A DNA stretch of 64,000 nucleotides, from sequence record NC_041975.1, one strand, 5' to 3'. This document shows, in pieces, positions 27,001 to 62,925 of the stretch (the stretch's first letter is position 1; every line of letters starts with the position of its first letter). The notes beneath the pieces are model-generated. The model ran no database searches, was not told the DNA's origin, and saw only the letters and a list, made by a program, of their open reading frames with translations. Made by a program: the position numbers and the translations under genes.

Positions 27001-27546
27001 CGCATCGAAACCTTCGAATTGTCAGCTACCCACATTGGGTCGGGTATTCCGATCACGACAGGCGTGCCGTCAACCGCGGGTAACTTTGCATGGCGTAATG
27101 GTTACTTGAAACTGATGAGCTTTGCAATGCAGCTGGACTATAATGGTATTGTGACAGTGAATCTGAGAACGGGTGCGGTAACCATTGAAATGAGTGTCTC
27201 TGGTACACCACCAGATTCTGTGAGCAGAACAAGAACACAGACTGTCTGGTCTACTGGTGAGACCTGGGTGCCTGGTCTGGTGACGGTGGGGACCGAAGCA
27301 TCAGGGGCAAGCGATGCATTCAATACGTACGCGAGTACATCGAAAACCTTCCCAGCTCTGGCGAGGTCAGATATCGCAAACAGTACTGGGCTTGCAGTTA
27401 TGATGGGTAACGAAAGTAACCCAACTAACAAAGGCGTCTTTACTCAGCAGCCAAGTGCAGCCAATGACTATACCCTTAAGTGGAAAGTCACTGATACACC
27501 GGGTGGTGCTGGCGAATACACCTTTGATCTGTATGTGAAATACTAA
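24091..27546 (+). CDS. Long tail-fibre protein, paralogue with extra C-terminal domain
   Basis: AAGGAG RBS; HQGINPISSFGSLSFL..GSFEG block; shared C-module ends at GNFAW and is followed by 150 extra aa. Confidence 0.75.
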   Translation: MSSNLVVEPGSWGEFYASIEALTWKLQNSRYSQYDLASTVMVNFENDVDDLVTSAQTLLASHQARRDNVHQVNAEQLGFGLVDNFKTATVAQAGEGGYPNLFVTPQGFNALASKVFADFGSSLHHQGINPISSFGSLSFLPPDVSGSFEGSGQVSGNSASPMIIEDDGTLVGLRYGTTGTTEGLYYFYLPTAEDRIDNASVIRTNFKYAPANLPAGAYCTDVYNTESDVLLGNIKGSSSYNWFISITNGTFDATKHNTAYFTINGDPDLAYLGKYSTALVVNGYVYIFGMLDDGFTTNRPIGGELKNTNPIDMVVWRVAVSSIINNNAVTLEKISAWSTKDIWGDTTSNPRIQLSKIAISENAADKPYVQVNGALVRSVIVRNAQRRLFAVVDPSNPNRIRLAVNHTFYAQLSTGSSYNGSCALSLLLDLTAKTAVVEDNANRILVGVNGQTVTVSGNTLLTDNLLTGSALGGNWHPNVTLTSRGYLFCRTSGNQPDENPRFSKGLITNFTTRFEAMRIRSRQVRQITLVTDPLVTGTALTNNFMKPQYLAGNALLLTSNPYKTPGYYAYGTTKRVLLTGSPTFNYTLNSGVTLQGWAPNSNRYEITDANNPPRNRFYHIITQVDSAGNVTSSPSVLSDGSSAQVGTSIDANLNITGSITFNQAELNTVAKAACQTALGAAPSLWRGLIYVPQDTAVPLIMVCTGEVLRSDGNGYRVNHSLVELTYTGARSGNITGYTVKRVLNSQLNDQQPTGVPLELACNGGLNIYKTAAGDYLLGIGEPTFHQTYGGIYGYVWYAAIKAGTGTIEDSSLKAFNHGYYPTSVNPTPVVVPGYGLCVMDYQTQQANANALMIVDVMAATYAEFVAWTSKRKLVLTAQQVEQGYLVYFTAPTQVFMAGNEYTLPAGNIDLRTITANPASKTFYVYVQLVDEQVQYLITLDQLAPTITLMYIGKITTNTTQISSIAVDKRIRIETFELSATHIGSGIPITTGVPSTAGNFAWRNGYLKLMSFAMQLDYNGIVTVNLRTGAVTIEMSVSGTPPDSVSRTRTQTVWSTGETWVPGLVTVGTEASGASDAFNTYASTSKTFPALARSDIANSTGLAVMMGNESNPTNKGVFTQQPSAANDYTLKWKVTDTPGGAGEYTFDLYVKY

Positions 27547-27548
27547 AT

Positions 27549-27594
27549 CGGCATAGAGGGAGAGGTGTTAACCTCTCCCTCGTGCTTTATGCCG
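27549..27594. terminator. Bidirectional terminator: CGGCATA-hairpin-TTTATGCCG
   Basis: 11-bp stem GAGGGAGAGGT/ACCTCTCCCTC with an exact TATGCCG on both strands. Confidence 0.9.
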
Positions 27595-44088: not shown

Positions 44089-44445
44089 ATGGAGGTCGTC
44101 ATGCCTTTTATTCGATTCAAAGCAAAAGAGATTAAACATACTGCGGAAGCCGTAACAAGCCTTAAGCGGTTCTTTGGTCTGATTGATAAAAACATTGATG
44201 CCGTTAAGATTGTCCAGGCATTTCAAACGGTCGATACCCGCAACGAACCATTGCTGGAAAACTCGTTGTTGATTATCACACGGATGCCAGACGGGACAAA
44301 ACGTCACACTCATATCTGGAACTCGAAGTTCAAAGAAGAACTCGCTGCATTTAAACCTGAACTGGTTGGTGAAGTCCGATCGTTCAGACTCGATTATCAG
44401 TTGTATATGGACGGCGACGAGGATAACCCCCTTAAGCGGTTCTAA
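44089..44445 (+). CDS. Hypothetical protein
   Basis: 118 aa (ATG 44089, or ATG 44101 with GGAGG RBS). Confidence 0.6.
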   Translation: MEVVMPFIRFKAKEIKHTAEAVTSLKRFFGLIDKNIDAVKIVQAFQTVDTRNEPLLENSLLIITRMPDGTKRHTHIWNSKFKEELAAFKPELVGEVRSFRLDYQLYMDGDEDNPLKRF

Positions 44446-44455
44446 GGAATCTAAA

Positions 44456-44978
44456 ATGAAAGGTACGTTGGTTGAGCATCTTGCCAGTCGTGGCTATGAT
44501 GTTGCACGGTATAAAACGCAGTGGTTGACAGACACCCAGTTGACTGTTCCATTGTTCGACTTCGATCACAAACTCAAAGGGTATCAGGTTTATACACCTG
44601 ATGCACCTAAGCATGCCGCTAACCCAAAAGAAGCACGTTACTTTACACGTGGTCTAGGTAAGCAGTTGGTGTGGGGTCTGGAGTTGGAAATTAGTATTAA
44701 CAACCAACAGATTACCAACCGTATTCTTAACTGAATCGGTTTTCAAGGCCTGTGCACTACATCGCTTAGGATTGAACGCCTGGTCTGTTTTAGGTTCTAC
44801 GGTATCTGACCCACTCTATCACCAGCTTCGCTTATTACCTGTTGACTTAGTTTGTTGCGGGGATGATGACAAAGCAGGGAAAGTATTCTCAGAAACCTTT
44901 GGTCGAGGTTTTGTGTCGCACGATCTGGATGAATTATCCCCGAAAGAATTACTCTACTTAACTGCACCGTTTTTATAA
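44456..44978 (+). pseudogene. Primase-like TOPRIM gene split by a +1 frameshift near 44690
   Basis: Frame 1 gives HLASRG...VPLFDFDHKLKGYQVY...RYFT...VWGLE. The +1 frame gives VFLTESVFKACALHRLGLNAWSVLGS...CCGDDDKAG (TOPRIM E and DxD). Confidence 0.7.
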
Positions 44979-44989
44979 AGGTAGTTATC

Positions 44990-46228
44990 ATGTCAAACAT
45001 TATTGAATTAGAAGGCAAGCAGGTTCCCATCAAGATGTGGACGAAGTTTGTTCCGGTAGAAGAACGTGCTCAACAGCAATTACTAAACTTGAGTGAGTTA
45101 CCTTTCATCTTCAAACACCTCGCCGTGATGCCTGATGTGCACTGGGGAATGGGTGCGACCATTGGTTCGGTTATTGCGACTAAAGGTGCGATTATTCCTG
45201 CTGCTGTGGGTGTTGATATTGGTTGTGGGATGATTGCCCAACAAACCTCGCTGGTTGCTGCTGACCTACCCGATAACCTCAGTGCTTTGCGCAGTCGTAT
45301 TGAAGCAGGCATCCCGCATGGCCGTACCGATAACGGCGGTGCAAACGATCGCGGTGCTTGGGGTGATGAGTTCGCCATGGGCTTAGACGATGTGCACCGT
45401 GAAGCATTGCTGGTTCTTCAGCAACGTTTAGTGGCTATTGTGGCTAAGCACCCGAAGCTCACCAAAGCAGCCAGTAAGTTCACCAAACATACTGGCACAC
45501 TGGGTAGCGGTAACCACTTCGTTGAAATCTGTTTAGACGAAGAGCAACGCGTTTGGGTAATGTTGCATTCAGGTTCACGTGGCATCGGTAACACCATCGG
45601 TAAATACTTCATCGAGAAAGCCAAAGAAGAGATGAACCGTTTCTTCGTCCATTTAGTTGACCAAGATCTGGCGTATCTCCCAGAAGGCTCTCAGTATTAC
45701 GATGACTACCTGCAAGCGGTGCAATGGGCACAAGACTTTGCAGCGCTCAATCGTGCGGTGATGCTGAGTGCGACACTGAAGGCATTGCACAGTGCCGTGG
45801 CTAAGCCATTCACTGAAAGCACCATTGCGGTTAACTGTCACCACAACTATGTCGCAATGGAAAACCATTTTGATACCAATGTCCTGGTCACCCGTAAAGG
45901 TGCAGTGCGGGCGCGTGTAGGTGATTTGGCGATTATCCCGGGTAGTATGGGTGCAAAGTCGTTTATTGTCGAAGGGCTGGGTAACCAGGAAAGCTTCTGT
46001 TCGTGCTCGCATGGTGCTGGTCGTTTACTGTCGCGCTCAGCAGCGGTGAAACAATTTAGTCTGGAAGACCATATCCGTGATACCGAGGGTGTGGAATGTC
46101 GTAAAGATAAAGACGTCCTTGATGAAACACCGAAGGCGTATAAGTCGATTGAAGACGTGATGCGTTCACAAGACGATTTGGTGAAAATCAAATATACCCT
46201 GAAACAGATCCTTTGTGTAAAAGGTTAA
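44990..46228 (+). CDS. rtcB: RtcB RNA ligase (3'-phosphate/cyclic-phosphate joining)
   Basis: MPDVHWG, VGVDIGCG, GTLGSGNHFVE, HSGSRG, NCHHNY, TRKGA, PGSMG, SCSHGAGR, DETPKAYK. Confidence 0.97.
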   Translation: MSNIIELEGKQVPIKMWTKFVPVEERAQQQLLNLSELPFIFKHLAVMPDVHWGMGATIGSVIATKGAIIPAAVGVDIGCGMIAQQTSLVAADLPDNLSALRSRIEAGIPHGRTDNGGANDRGAWGDEFAMGLDDVHREALLVLQQRLVAIVAKHPKLTKAASKFTKHTGTLGSGNHFVEICLDEEQRVWVMLHSGSRGIGNTIGKYFIEKAKEEMNRFFVHLVDQDLAYLPEGSQYYDDYLQAVQWAQDFAALNRAVMLSATLKALHSAVAKPFTESTIAVNCHHNYVAMENHFDTNVLVTRKGAVRARVGDLAIIPGSMGAKSFIVEGLGNQESFCSCSHGAGRLLSRSAAVKQFSLEDHIRDTEGVECRKDKDVLDETPKAYKSIEDVMRSQDDLVKIKYTLKQILCVKG

Positions 46229-46230
46229 TT

Positions 46231-46551
46231 ATGAACAAGAAAAAGCAAGTTACGATCTTCGTGGCGGGTGATGTCAATTCAGCTAAGACCACGGTCATTG
46301 CCATTATTGAAAAGGCGCTGAAAGAAGCGGGTCTGGATGCCAAACTGCTTGCGCATGCAGCGGCGGATGCGGAATATTTCGTTGGCGTAAAAAGCGCGTT
46401 AGAATATATTCCAGAGATCAGCGATAAGGTCGAGGTCTCCATTGAAGAACTCACCCGCCCAGCACCGACCAACGATGATGGCTCGCGCCCTGAGAGTTAT
46501 GTGGCGATCACACATAGCGCCGGCATCAAGATCCTTCCCCGTAACAGCTAG
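46231..46551 (+). CDS. Small protein with degenerate P-loop, related to 36537
   Basis: VTIFVAGDVNSAKTTVIAIIEKAL versus ITVKVVGPIQAGKTAIASLLDNAL. Confidence 0.65.
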   Translation: MNKKKQVTIFVAGDVNSAKTTVIAIIEKALKEAGLDAKLLAHAAADAEYFVGVKSALEYIPEISDKVEVSIEELTRPAPTNDDGSRPESYVAITHSAGIKILPRNS

Positions 46552-52789: not shown

Positions 52790-52806
52790 CCTATTAGGAG
52801 CTGTTT

Positions 52807-53397
52807 ATGGAGAGGATAACATTAGCTTGGCTAAGAGCTAATCAAGGAAGGAAATCTCTGGAAGATCGTTTGTTTCAATTCGGTCACGTTTATAGTGAGA
52901 GAGATTCCTGTTTCACCTGGCGTGGGATGGTGGATAATTACGGCTACGGAAAGATAAAGGTTAAAAGTAGATTGGTGGGTGCACACAAACTGTCTTATCT
53001 GCTATTCAAAGGGGATATTCCAGAAGGTATGGTAGTTAGACACACGTGCGATAACCCAGTCTGTATTAACCCCTCTCATTTAATCGCGGGTACGGTAAAG
53101 CAAAACGTTCATGATGCAATAGCAAAAGGCCGTGCTTCTTTTCAGAATGTTATCAATTCATCGGTATGTAAGTTTCTGCCGGCCAACGCTATTATTATGG
53201 TAGATAGAAAGATAGGCCCACTACTATGTTATGCAACAACCCGGCGATTAGCCCTTGCTGATAATTCTAAAGTTTACTGGGGTCGTCCGTGTAGGTCACA
53301 CGGCATGCCTTGGAGAAGAACCAGTAATGGCGAATGTGTCTATTGCAGACACGAATACCGAGCAGGTGTGAAGTATACACCTAATGGAAAGAGGTGA
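52807..53397 (+). mobile_element. Free-standing HNH homing endonuclease
   Basis: CFTWRG...GYG....AHKLSY...GDIPEGMVVRHTCDNPVCINPSHL..GT..QN..D..KGR plus a C-terminal CxxH...CxxC. More AT-rich than neighbours and uses AGA codons; AGGAG RBS. Confidence 0.9.
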
Positions 53398-53412
53398 TCC
53401 CTTTATCTTCCG

Positions 53413-53488
53413 CGGGTGAGGGTTAGAACCCGGCTGTGGCCGCATAGCCAAAGTCGGTTAATCAAAGTCGACGGATTTGGATTACCCG
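53413..53488 (+). ncRNA. Candidate structured RNA (four-way junction) downstream of the HNH gene
   Basis: Closing stem CGGGTGA/TTACCCG encloses hairpins GGGT-TAGA-ACCC, GGCTGTG-GCCG-CATAGCC and GTCGG...TCGAC. Folded by eye only. Confidence 0.35.
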
Positions 53489-53550
53489 GCGTGACTTGTC
53501 ATTGTTTCACTTTGTTCTACTACACAAACAGCTCAACTCTCTCATAATTC

Positions 53551-53581
53551 AAGGGGTGGGGTAACTCACCCCTTTATGCCG
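53551..53581 (+). terminator. Hairpin + TATGCCG
   Basis: AAGGGGTGGG-GTAA-CTCACCCCTT. Confidence 0.85.
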
Positions 53582-53596
53582 CAAGGATCTATTATC

Positions 53597-53929
53597 ATGC
53601 AGGAATTCTTCAAAAGCTACGGCACGTACTTCTTTGATGTACTCATGTTTATCATGGTGTTCGCCTGGTGTTTCTGTGGCAGTGGCGGCACACGTCATGA
53701 CAAAAACAAATGGTTGCGTTACGGCGCACCTGTTGCATTGGGTCTTTTTGTTGTGCTGGTCGTCCACGGGTTTGGTGCATTTGATCGTTATCTGGAAAGG
53801 AATAAGTGCGCTGACTTACCAATAGGTGTCGGCGTAATGATTGAAGGCCGCTGCTACAAGCGCGTTGATGGACCCGTGTACATATCCGCCGACAGTACCG
53901 TGTACAAGGAGAGCAATGTACATGACTGA
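53597..53929 (+). CDS. Small 2-TM membrane protein
   Basis: AAGGA RBS; two hydrophobic segments. Confidence 0.65.
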   Translation: MQEFFKSYGTYFFDVLMFIMVFAWCFCGSGGTRHDKNKWLRYGAPVALGLFVVLVVHGFGAFDRYLERNKCADLPIGVGVMIEGRCYKRVDGPVYISADSTVYKESNVHD

Positions 53930-54791: not shown

Positions 54792-55502
54792 ATGATCGTT
54801 GTTGTTGTTGATACTGAATCGACTGCTTTGGATGAGCTCGCGGGTATTCTGAGTTTGTCCGCTATTCGCACTAACGTGGCTGACATGAGTTGCATCAAGC
54901 ACCTGATCGGCGTGCACCAAGCCGGCAAGACGCATGACGACATCTTCCATGCCGTATTGAACCTCAATGAACAATACGTGATGGGTCGTACCTTCTTGCA
55001 AAGCACGCAGGATTGGTGGATGAAGAAAACCACCCCGGCGGCGAAGGCTTCAGTAACCGGACCAACGCAGTCTGCAAAAGATGCTTTGACAGCATTTGTG
55101 GTTTTCATCGAAAAGGCCATTGAGGCGACGATTAACGAACGCGGGGAGAAAGCGAAGGTCCAGCTGTACTACCGTGGCGACTTCGATGCTAAAGCCATTG
55201 CGTCCCTGGCAAAAGCGGTGGGTGTTGAACTCCCGTATATTTTCAATCAGAACAAAGAGATCCGCACATATATCGATGCCAAGCTGGACACGGATATCGG
55301 TTATATCCCGTGGCTCGGTTACCCAGAAGGACTGGGGCGTCATAGCTCACTCGATGATGTTCTAATCGATGGCTTCGAGATGGCGGTGGCCTATCGCATC
55401 AATCACCTCGAAAAGTTCGATAAAAAGTCGGTGCCGGGCGAGATCGCCAAACTGAAAGAAACGTACCCTGTTCCGGAGAAAACCCATGCAAAATCTAAAT
55501 GA
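54792..55502 (+). CDS. DEDDh-family 3'-5' exonuclease
   Basis: ExoI VVVDTESTAL, ExoII RGDFDAKAI, ExoIII HSSLDDV; AAGGA RBS. Confidence 0.82.
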   Translation: MIVVVVDTESTALDELAGILSLSAIRTNVADMSCIKHLIGVHQAGKTHDDIFHAVLNLNEQYVMGRTFLQSTQDWWMKKTTPAAKASVTGPTQSAKDALTAFVVFIEKAIEATINERGEKAKVQLYYRGDFDAKAIASLAKAVGVELPYIFNQNKEIRTYIDAKLDTDIGYIPWLGYPEGLGRHSSLDDVLIDGFEMAVAYRINHLEKFDKKSVPGEIAKLKETYPVPEKTHAKSK

Positions 55503-56208
55503 CCGTATCTTTGCCAATTATGATGGTTACATTGAAGCTATTGATGCGCATTTTAAACCTACCTATCAACTGCAGCTGGCTGAGCAAGTCATCCCGGCTG
55601 AACAGATGGATAAGCTTGTAACCTGGATGGACCACAACGCCCATGTCAAGGGCGCAACCGTCTATCTGATGGAGTTGGTGCCTGATCTCGATAAACCGCA
55701 TCCTGTGCAATCAGAGATGCGTGTGTTTATTGCACTCGGTATGTTTAATCGTGAAGTCAACCCTGATTTGCCTTACTGGTGTCATGTACATCACCATTAT
55801 CCGGTTAACCTCGCTGTCGACTTGATTGTTACTGACCTGCAAGGCGTTCCTGTAACCCATGCCGTTCTGACTGCGTTTAAGTCATTTGATCGAGCGCGTA
55901 CCTACAGGGATAATCTCGGCGGCAAAGGTGGACATCAACCGCATCACGAAATCCATACTGGCATTATTGACCAAAGTGGTAAGGTGATCTTCGAAGCCTA
56001 CGGGAATATCAACTGGCATACCAAGAATGCCATTCGCCGGCTGGCTGAACGACAGATCCTACAGGAAGATACCGAGTTGTCAGCGGTGTGGTTACTGGCG
56101 GGTTTAAAAGCAGGTGTCAACTGGAAAGTCGAAGACCACGTTGACATCATGAAGGCAATCGATACTTTCCGTCCGAGGAATACCCATGATTTTAACGGCT
56201 ATGTTTAA
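55486..56208 (+). CDS. Hypothetical protein
   Basis: 240 aa; overlaps both neighbours. Confidence 0.7.
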   Translation: MQNLNDRIFANYDGYIEAIDAHFKPTYQLQLAEQVIPAEQMDKLVTWMDHNAHVKGATVYLMELVPDLDKPHPVQSEMRVFIALGMFNREVNPDLPYWCHVHHHYPVNLAVDLIVTDLQGVPVTHAVLTAFKSFDRARTYRDNLGGKGGHQPHHEIHTGIIDQSGKVIFEAYGNINWHTKNAIRRLAERQILQEDTELSAVWLLAGLKAGVNWKVEDHVDIMKAIDTFRPRNTHDFNGYV

Positions 56209-56950
56209 GAAGTGCTTTGGTGCGTCGTCTGTCTATAAAGAAGATGACGGCAGTACACGCATTACCGCTGACCAGTATGAACTTACGCTGGGTCGATCCT
56301 ACCATCCTAAGCTTAAGCGTAAGGTAGGTCGGGGTTTTGGTTTCTATGTCGAAAATGGCGAGAAGCTCGAGTTCGTCTTGCGGGGTTACTGGTTTGTGTT
56401 GATCGCCTGGAGCAAGAAGCGCAAATCACTCAAGTGGGACGAAGCGGAGAATGCACCGACTTACGGCTTCAATGTTGTTGACTCTGACTTAGCGATCTAT
56501 CTCGGCAACGAATCCGCTAAGTCAGACAAACACATCAGCATGCGTAGTCGTAGCAAATATATCCCCCTGCCCTGGGCCTGGACCTTCCATAAGCGTGAAG
56601 TGTTAACCACCCGTGACACCTGGGCTGATGTCAAAGAAGGTGCGTTGTCTCAAGAGTGGTCGTTCCCCGCCACATACGTCACCAAGCACAATGAAGTGCA
56701 AGAGATGATGATCGAAGCGAAGATGGAGCGCATGACCTGGCGCCTGGCATGGCTCCCTTGGTTCGTACCGGTTACCAAGAAAGACCGCTCGGCGAGTTAC
56801 AAGTACCACGGGAACGGTGGTAACGGGGTTGGTCACGACGCCAGTGGCTGGAAAGGCGGGGTCATCGGTGGCGGGGTCATCATGCGAGACAATGAACACA
56901 ACCCGAAAGAAACATTCGACCGTTTAATTAAAGAGCAGCATTACGGCTAA
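56201..56950 (+). CDS. Hypothetical protein (Trp/Lys-rich)
   Basis: Long ORF; ATG 56201 preferred over 56186. Confidence 0.7.
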   Translation: MFKKCFGASSVYKEDDGSTRITADQYELTLGRSYHPKLKRKVGRGFGFYVENGEKLEFVLRGYWFVLIAWSKKRKSLKWDEAENAPTYGFNVVDSDLAIYLGNESAKSDKHISMRSRSKYIPLPWAWTFHKREVLTTRDTWADVKEGALSQEWSFPATYVTKHNEVQEMMIEAKMERMTWRLAWLPWFVPVTKKDRSASYKYHGNGGNGVGHDASGWKGGVIGGGVIMRDNEHNPKETFDRLIKEQHYG

Positions 56951-62803: not shown

Positions 62804-62925
62804 GTTCTTTCTTCTTTGTAATTCTCAACACATTCGGTCTTTGTTATACAAAGGCTATAATCTTTGTCCCGAGCTAAGGGTAACGTGAACAGTTATGCTG
62901 GCTTACTTTTTAAAGGTATCTTTTC

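Follow-up and report, generated by a model that had tools for sequence, protein, structure and literature searches.

The segment from about 53388 to 53581 of the Erwinia phage vB_EamM_Special G is, on balance, probably a resident single-copy non-coding RNA element on the + strand, composed of three hairpins and ending in a standard terminator; this reading is built on comparative sequence analysis. Alignment with related phages identifies the HNH endonuclease gene directly upstream (gp63) as a later insertion, which the RNA block predates and of which it is independent. The window analysed is the whole 64,000-nt stretch of record NC_041975.1, which is identical in all 1001 compared bases, and in numbering, to the genome of Special G (KU886222.1). 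Special G is a 273-kb jumbo phage of Agricanvirus. Phages of the Agricanvirus group encode the tubulin PhuZ and split multisubunit RNA polymerases, which places them in the phiKZ-like world, and the PhuZ-encoding jumbo phages considered here probably form a phage nucleus.

The features of the locus are collected in Table 1. An earlier sequence-only reading had proposed a four-way-junction RNA that travels with the HNH gene as a regulatory or guide-like partner of the nuclease, a ribozyme or processing signal, or a tRNA relic. The strings that it named were all found where it had placed them, as were the HNH stop at 53397 and the start of the GC hairpin at 53551.

Table 1. Coordinates in the 64,000-nt window of the RNA element, its parts and the neighbouring features.
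Feature	Position	Strand	Basis or remark
gp63, free-standing HNH_3 homing-endonuclease gene	52807..53397	+	Pfam HNH_3, E 1.5e-10
Resident motif AAAGAGGTGATCC	53388..53400	+	Holds the HNH stop TGA (53395-97); right edge of the insertion
Hairpin H1, CGGGU/ACCCG	53413..53432 (53413-17/53428-32)	+	RNAalifold consensus; all cells pair
H1 loop, 10 nt, R-AGGGUUAGA	53418-53427	+	Near-invariant in all lineages
Hairpin H2 region	53432..53450	+	Common core UGGC/GCCA, 53437-40/53447-50
Hairpin H3, long and interrupted, 16 paired columns, GACG loop at 53470-73	53453-69/53474-90	+	RNAalifold consensus
Spacer of variable length, with a small conserved UCUA-Y-ACA box at 53516-53526	53491..53550	+	Alignments; 60 nt here, 23 nt in SA002
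phiKZ-type terminator, GC hairpin 53551-60/53565-74 plus TATGCCG 53575-81	53551..53581	+	Recurrence, covariation
GC hairpin plus (Y)TTATGCCG, copies in the window	5439, 6023(-), 11350(-), 16146, 27555(-), 27588, 35279, 40437, 47597, 50059, 53575, 54150, 58540	mixed	
gp64, 110-aa protein with two hydrophobic stretches	53597..53929	+	Next gene after the element
Strings named in the sequence-only reading	CGGGTGA 53413-19; TTACCCG 53482-88; GGGT/ACCC 53420-31; GGCTGTG..CATAGCC 53432-49; GTCGG 53453-57	+	All located

The gp63 gene is missing from the phages RAY, Bosolaphorus, Rebecca, Deimos-Minion and AH06 and from several metagenome contigs, and the HNH gene is found in 10 of 17 records of related phages. 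Six of the 17 covered the query only partially, in two pieces lying either side of the HNH gene, and AH06 matched in the gap only. Alignment of Special G with RAY, Deimos-Minion and AH06 recovered the entire gap 3' of the HNH stop in all three, with the HNH gene as a clean insertion, and in one metagenome contig position 52796 is joined to 53401, 29 other letters replacing 604. Both HNH-plus and HNH-minus forms occur among metagenome contigs from Logan and ENA. The last HNH codons, TGA included, sit in the resident motif at the right edge of the insertion. All 13 nucleotides of this motif are identical in L043, an HNH-less metagenome contig, which marks the HNH gene as a newcomer, inserted at the 5' edge of a block that was there before it. 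The string GGTGATC is kept in nearly all HNH-less lineages, the phage pEa_SNUABM_37 (pEa37) being one base off (GGTGGTC), and it falls inside a natural 22-nt deletion in three metagenome contigs.

The gp63 protein is 196 aa long, and its domains are HNH_3 plus a weak, sub-threshold match to the His-Me zinc-loop. With an HNH domain, and with its gene present or absent at one site among near-identical genomes, it has the marks of a homing cassette. The same is seen in the free-standing HNH genes of phages (HNH_3, as annotated for T7 gene 7.7; mobE of Aeh1), where a small HNH_3 protein is likewise encoded in an intergenic position beside highly conserved DNA; the sole oddity of gp63 is a stop codon borrowed from the resident motif. 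Homing endonuclease genes typically adjoin conserved DNA. At this locus an HNH homing endonuclease would have settled at the 5' edge of a conserved block and taken the TGA of the block as its stop, making the block a landing place for the gene and not its partner.

The sequence-only reading drew on the position of the RNA directly 3' of the HNH gene, where co-transcription is expected in Special G. Its central claim, that the RNA travels with the HNH element, is contradicted by the distribution of the block, which is nearly unchanged in HNH-less relatives and is present in two distant HNH-less jumbo phages; altogether, at least five lineages have the RNA but no HNH gene at the site. HNH_3 homologues are found in more than 1000 phage records, whereas the RNA block is limited to one small clade, and at least in AH06 the annotation lists a further HNH gene at another place, yet the RNA is single-copy there too. 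A nuclease-associated guide RNA, such as the omega-RNA of IscB/TnpB, was rejected because the RNA is found in phages and contigs that lack the HNH gene, and gp63, a homing endonuclease of the HNH_3 type with 196 residues, does not belong to the RNA-guided nucleases, which contain RuvC and have about 400 aa or more. Together with the results on the junction and on known RNA families given below, this leaves an RNA partner of the HNH element hardly credible.

The intergenic block, of about 190 nt, was also found in RAY, Deimos-Minion, AH06 and several metagenome contigs without the HNH gene, and its identity in HNH-less relatives is 98-99%. Its identity to AH06, a phage of E. billingiae, amounts to 91% over 203 nt. 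The proteins flanking the block are only 31% and 37.5% identical between Special G and AH06, and some 1.1-1.8 kb on each side cannot be aligned as DNA; the mean identity across the window is 76%. Among 200-nt windows ranked by identity between these two phages the block stands at about the 96th percentile, not first, and part of its similarity could stem from recent exchange. Public assemblies yielded two further sequence types, L021/L033 and L042/L043, and in contig L033 the upstream gene is a different one (140 aa).

A covariance model of the 77-nt core (R1) gave a single full-length match in each of two distant phages, Salmonella phage SA002 (32.5 bits) and Erwinia phage pEa37 (31.3 bits). 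Each was the top match of a genome of about 290 kb, with E about 1e-4, a rough value owing to shortened calibration. Both copies lie in a syntenic gap of about 235 nt, roughly 1.5 kb upstream of an exonuclease homologue. Both phages are HNH-less, and the genes immediately adjoining the element are unrelated to those of Special G; pEa37 shows only about 50% identity in a large virion structural protein, which in AH06 carries the annotation portal. All lineages share one layout of the gap: an AT-rich box after the upstream stop, GGTGATC, the three hairpins, the spacer, the GC hairpin with TTATGCCG, and a ribosome-binding site with ATG. The alignments thus describe a block under constraint, maintained while the genes on both sides get replaced.

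Two variants of the 5' part were observed. Three metagenome contigs (L022:2780-2830, L026 and L027) have lost 22 nt between two GGTGA repeats just 5' of H1, corresponding to about 53393-53414 of the window, so this stretch is dispensable. A further hairpin on the 5' side, with a compensated pair, occurs in SA002 (GTGAC...GTCAC, L035:5308-5337) and pEa37 (GTGGT...GCCAC, L034:5654-5683) and is lacking in Agricanvirus; the 3' spacer of SA002 and pEa37 is shorter to match, and the total length of the gap stays about constant.

There was one copy of the element per genome in every genome searched with blastn and both covariance models. A blastn search of INPHARED in distant mode returned Agricanvirus only, and the same search with the SA002 sequence returned pEa37 and pEa48 only. 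In IMG/VR, searched by flanking proteins and three DNA patterns, RAY alone was found besides chance 16-mer matches. The first pattern used on metagenomes had no matches and the second, a degenerate one, added two new contigs. GTDB bacterial genomes contained no match to the element, and a word-based protein search with gp62 and gp64 gave one cluster each. The other covariance model, R2, scored 16 bits or less, at the level of noise, in FLC4-3B, PA1C, 201phi2-1, KpLz-2_45 and RisingSun; the best-looking of these matches, in PA1C, turned out to be a terminator hairpin. As mapped by these searches, the range of the element is the Agricanvirus jumbo phages and their nearest relatives, SA002 and pEa_SNUABM_37/48.

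Thermodynamic folding favoured structure on the + strand. The 80-nt core reached -32 kcal/mol (z -2.9, with 1 of 200 shuffles as good), against a z-score of -0.96 for the - strand, and the 178-nt gap had a z-score of -3.2; overall the folding z-scores ranged from -2.9 to -4.0. Conservation of structure was assessed on a MAFFT alignment of eight sequences from five lineages (A5). Two of the five lineages had been found with a model built on the three-hairpin structure, and the pair counts were taken from the independent MAFFT alignment. RNAalifold, unaided, predicts H1, the core of H2, and H3. In this consensus 96% of cells are paired and 10 pairs have changed on both sides across the five lineages, giving a covariation score of 0.394, compared with 0.211 for shuffles (0 of 500 reach the observed value) and at most 0.096 for slid controls.

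The changes are spread over all three hairpins. A U-A pair of H1 becomes G-C in SA002 and pEa37, and two pairs of the common H2 core have changed on both sides (U-A to C-G and G-C to A-U). H3 has 7 of its 16 pairs changed on both sides with 94% of cells paired, and in a random-substitution simulation the probability that its helix was preserved by chance was 0.002 for AH06 and 0.02 for the L021 type. The top of H3 (AAGUCG...) is conserved in sequence and the lower stems change by compensation. Since U-G and G-U pairs are invariant, the structure is assigned to the + strand. As reconstructed from these lineages, the fold is a row of three consecutive hairpins with stems evolving by compensatory change. 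Drifting stems combined with a fixed H1 loop and a fixed H3 top suggest that the unpaired parts are recognised by their sequence.

This fold replaces the four-way junction of the sequence-only reading. Across the same eight sequences and five lineages the junction has no pair changed on both sides, and its closing stem, which can be drawn in most lineages with the help of G-U pairs, is paired in 84% of cells. Neither this stem nor the third proposed hairpin, GTCGG/TCGAC, appears in the minimum-energy fold or the RNAalifold consensus, which have the long hairpin 53453-53490 in their place. The remaining two hairpins fared better. Agricanvirus H2 can form the proposed 7-bp stem GGCTGTG/CATAGCC (53432-38/53443-49), which is the stable form there and is kept by thermodynamic folding, but its fourth pair varies uncompensated across lineages. 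A hairpin does exist at GGGT-TAGA-ACCC, but the inner pairing breaks in SA002 and pEa37 and 53413-17 is the better, outer partner. The expectation that the stretch folds below shuffled controls was borne out (z about -3 on the + strand). The broader idea of an element structured at the RNA level also stands, given covariation, G-U pairs confined to the + strand and conservation well above the flanks; what falls away is its tie to HNH loci.

No known RNA family accounts for the element. ARAGORN found no tRNA gene in the 64 kb, and D- and T-loop motifs are lacking, in agreement with the initial observation. Element and tRNA are alike in size (about 76 nt), and a cloverleaf can be drawn by eye, but the element differs in having neither these motifs nor covariation in its closing stem. 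The suggested tRNA relic was therefore dropped, as neither ARAGORN nor Rfam gave a tRNA or tmRNA match and the acceptor-like closing stem does not covary. Known self-cleaving ribozymes and group I or II introns were rejected as well: no Rfam model matched and there is no split host gene. A cmscan search of Special G, RAY and SA002 against Rfam at E<=10 returned chance matches only, far below gathering scores.

The gap had also been described as free of open reading frames. A mechanical 43-aa frame with a GTG start does exist at 53416-53547; it is not conserved and is broken in relatives by indels that are not multiples of three. Open frames differ among lineages and the indels do not come in triplets, as in non-coding intergenic DNA, and the conserved, covarying secondary structure is as expected for a jumbo-phage small RNA. 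The element is a previously undescribed small family, without an Rfam entry, among the folded intergenic RNAs of jumbo phages.

We attach almost no credence to the view that the block is neutral intergenic DNA, shared through recent exchange among close phages, with chance hairpins. It would fit with the mosaic exchange seen in other 200-nt windows, mostly coding, that are 94-97% identical between Special G and AH06, and with the near-identity of most Agricanvirus copies, which makes these uninformative. It does not fit with full-length structural homologues in syntenic position in phages that share only about 50% identity in a virion structural protein, nor with the compensated pairs, a covariation score unreached by any shuffle or slid control, and the folding z-scores.

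A function at the level of DNA, as a replication origin, a protein-binding site or a hot spot for recombination or homing, with hairpins that are incidental or form in the DNA itself, is very unlikely. The block is conserved and non-coding, has an AT-rich box beside GC-rich inverted repeats, lies near genes of DNA metabolism, received a homing endonuclease at its edge and shows a natural deletion between GGTGA repeats, all of which would suit such a function. Against it, the conserved U-G and G-U pairs and the changes from G-C to G-U pair on the + strand only, the - strand folds no better than shuffles, and stem sequences drift with pairing kept, which is typical of RNA. A turn in GC skew was looked for at the locus and none was found, and a replication origin was accordingly rejected.

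The hairpin at 53551-53581 is likely the 3' end of the RNA. Its motif occurs 8 times in the window against 0.86 expected, and about 13 copies lie behind GC hairpins (Table 1). One copy is two-faced (27549-27594) and occupies the 49 nt that separate two convergent genes with ends at 27546 and 27596; facing both ways is what a terminator does there, and a promoter would have no need of it. The stem covaries (G-U to A-U and U-A to U-G, and, by eye, G-C to A-U in L043), and the motif follows the RNA element in every lineage, SA002 and pEa37 included. The 9-mer TTTATGCCG is among the commonest, tied for the top, in the first 70 kb of AH06. Both phiKZ and 201phi2-1 possess terminator motifs that are conserved and, where genes converge, terminators that face both ways (PMC10914365, PMC11512511). 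The motif at 53551-53581 is like them in genome-wide recurrence and two-facedness, in a comparison with papers whose text does not give the motif letters. The likeness is confined to the 3' end of the element; the structured part upstream, of 150 nt, is single-copy and outside the terminator family. TATG is also the core of phiKZ late promoters, with G as +1 (PMC4666361, PMC12809450), and the terminator motif, which contains TATG, may by analogy serve transcription restart as well.

The terminator bears on the annotation of gp64. The start codon annotated for this gene, ATG 53576, belongs to the terminator motif TATGCCG itself and gives a protein of 117 aa. An AAGGA lies 10 nt before ATG 53597, independent gene calls on metagenome contigs give 110 aa, and in AH06 the start is at the place equivalent to 53597. 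The true start of gp64 is thus probably 53597 and not 53576.

The put RNAs of phage HK022 are cis-acting antiterminator RNAs with two stem-loops, located just downstream of a promoter, that act on the host RNA polymerase. The element likewise is a compact run of stem-loops with conserved unpaired bases upstream of terminators, a likeness that is positional only; it differs from put in having three hairpins, in belonging to phages that encode multisubunit polymerases of their own, and in having no mapped promoter. A cis-acting control of the transcript, either put-like antitermination past 53551-53581 or a site of mRNA processing or stability, which would govern gp64 and the exonuclease operon, is an unlikely explanation that nonetheless accounts for several observations. 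In every lineage a terminator follows the element directly; the element shares its strand with the downstream run of genes, and more copies of the same terminator punctuate that run; no terminator separates the upstream gene from the RNA; there are several hairpins with conserved loops; and the exonuclease is the only neighbour retained across clades, beginning 1.3 kb downstream in Special G (gp67) and 1.3-1.5 kb downstream overall. Antitermination has also been raised as a possibility for jumbo phages in the study of 201phi2-1 (PMC11512511). Set against this, the spacer to the terminator varies between 23 and 60 nt, the element has one copy per genome despite dozens of terminators, and the immediate downstream gene differs between clades. 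Alternative pairing of the element with the terminator stem was not seen by eye, and on this evidence, which is weak, a switch of the riboswitch type between terminator and antiterminator was rejected too.

In the reading that we prefer, a non-coding RNA with its own ends, the RNA would begin near the AT-rich box, TATTATATAGG, in HNH-less phages. This box is conserved there directly behind the upstream stop codon and could be a candidate promoter of the RNA. Elsewhere in these genomes it does not recur as a promoter motif, and viable HNH-plus phages have it in disrupted form; both points weaken the promoter step. No AT-rich k-mers are enriched in this part of the genome, and a sigma-70 scan of the region gave nothing better than shuffles. 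In Special G the RNA would instead be co-transcribed with gp62 and the HNH gene. None of the public runs that hold DNA of the element is recorded as RNA, and the one run that is possibly RNA covered just part of the HNH gene, by a single contig. A literature search on Agricanvirus transcription or RNAs found nothing.

As to mechanism, we tentatively propose, at a level somewhat short of probable, a small non-coding RNA of about 200 nt whose activity depends on the invariant loop. The element would be released as a small RNA of roughly this size, and a protein or a second RNA would be bound by its invariant unpaired parts, namely the loop of H1 (10 nt) and the top of H3. Outside the element itself, four phage genomes contain no perfect complement of the nine invariant loop bases. 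A more specific and distinctly doubtful idea is that a new functional family of RNAs in these phages begins with this element: either a cis RNA that reprograms the phage multisubunit RNA polymerase to read through terminators of the phiKZ type, or a decoy or sponge whose invariant 10-nt loop captures a host factor or a defence protein.

The closest known counterparts come from other jumbo phages. Intergenic and leader-derived sRNAs of less than 250 nt have been mapped in 201phi2-1, and one in phiKZ (PMC11512511). The sRNA005 of 201phi2-1 and the sRNA from the gp182 leader of phiKZ, both mapped by ONT-cappable-seq (PMC11512511), are, like the element, short (<250 nt), folded, non-coding, intergenic or leader-derived and terminator-ended, and position and structure are in both cases conserved across genera. 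They differ from it in showing no similarity of sequence or model (R2 gave noise in 201phi2-1 and the four other phiKZ-like genomes), in adjoining a tail gene where the element lies in the neighbourhood of an exonuclease operon, and in having mapped ends, those of the element being predicted from sequence. RNA regulation in jumbo phages is almost unexplored, with a handful of sRNAs mapped in Pseudomonas phages and none of known function. The element adds a candidate well supported by covariation, a defined fold and natural variants, in culturable phages of the fire-blight pathogen. The locus is, besides, a clean example of homing, in which an endonuclease stands beside a conserved non-coding RNA locus and borrows its stop codon, and it corrects a tempting annotation as nuclease plus guide RNA.

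Several observations were made beside the element. In RAY the 300-nt gap after the PhuZ tubulin gene (173070-173280; L044:270-480) opens with CTATTATATGTAAC, which resembles the AT-rich box, and also contains a GC hairpin with TTATGCCG behind it; this gap may be a further non-coding unit. Precomputed Pfam assignments for the equivalent genes of related contigs place gp67 (54792-55502) with the Rv2179c-like exonucleases (PF16473) and gp69 (56186-56950) in family PF25187 (Acb3). We take Acb3 to stand for anti-CBASS protein 3, and gp69 would then, if the name is so meant, be a candidate counter-defence gene. Positions 44300-46250 of the window, syntenic with the RtcB-ligase and thymidylate-kinase genes of AH06, are 95-97% identical to AH06 against the mean of 76%, which suggests recent exchange or very strong constraint. 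A 65-nt stretch at 62838-62900 is 86% identical to AH06 amid poor alignment and may be another small conserved non-coding island.
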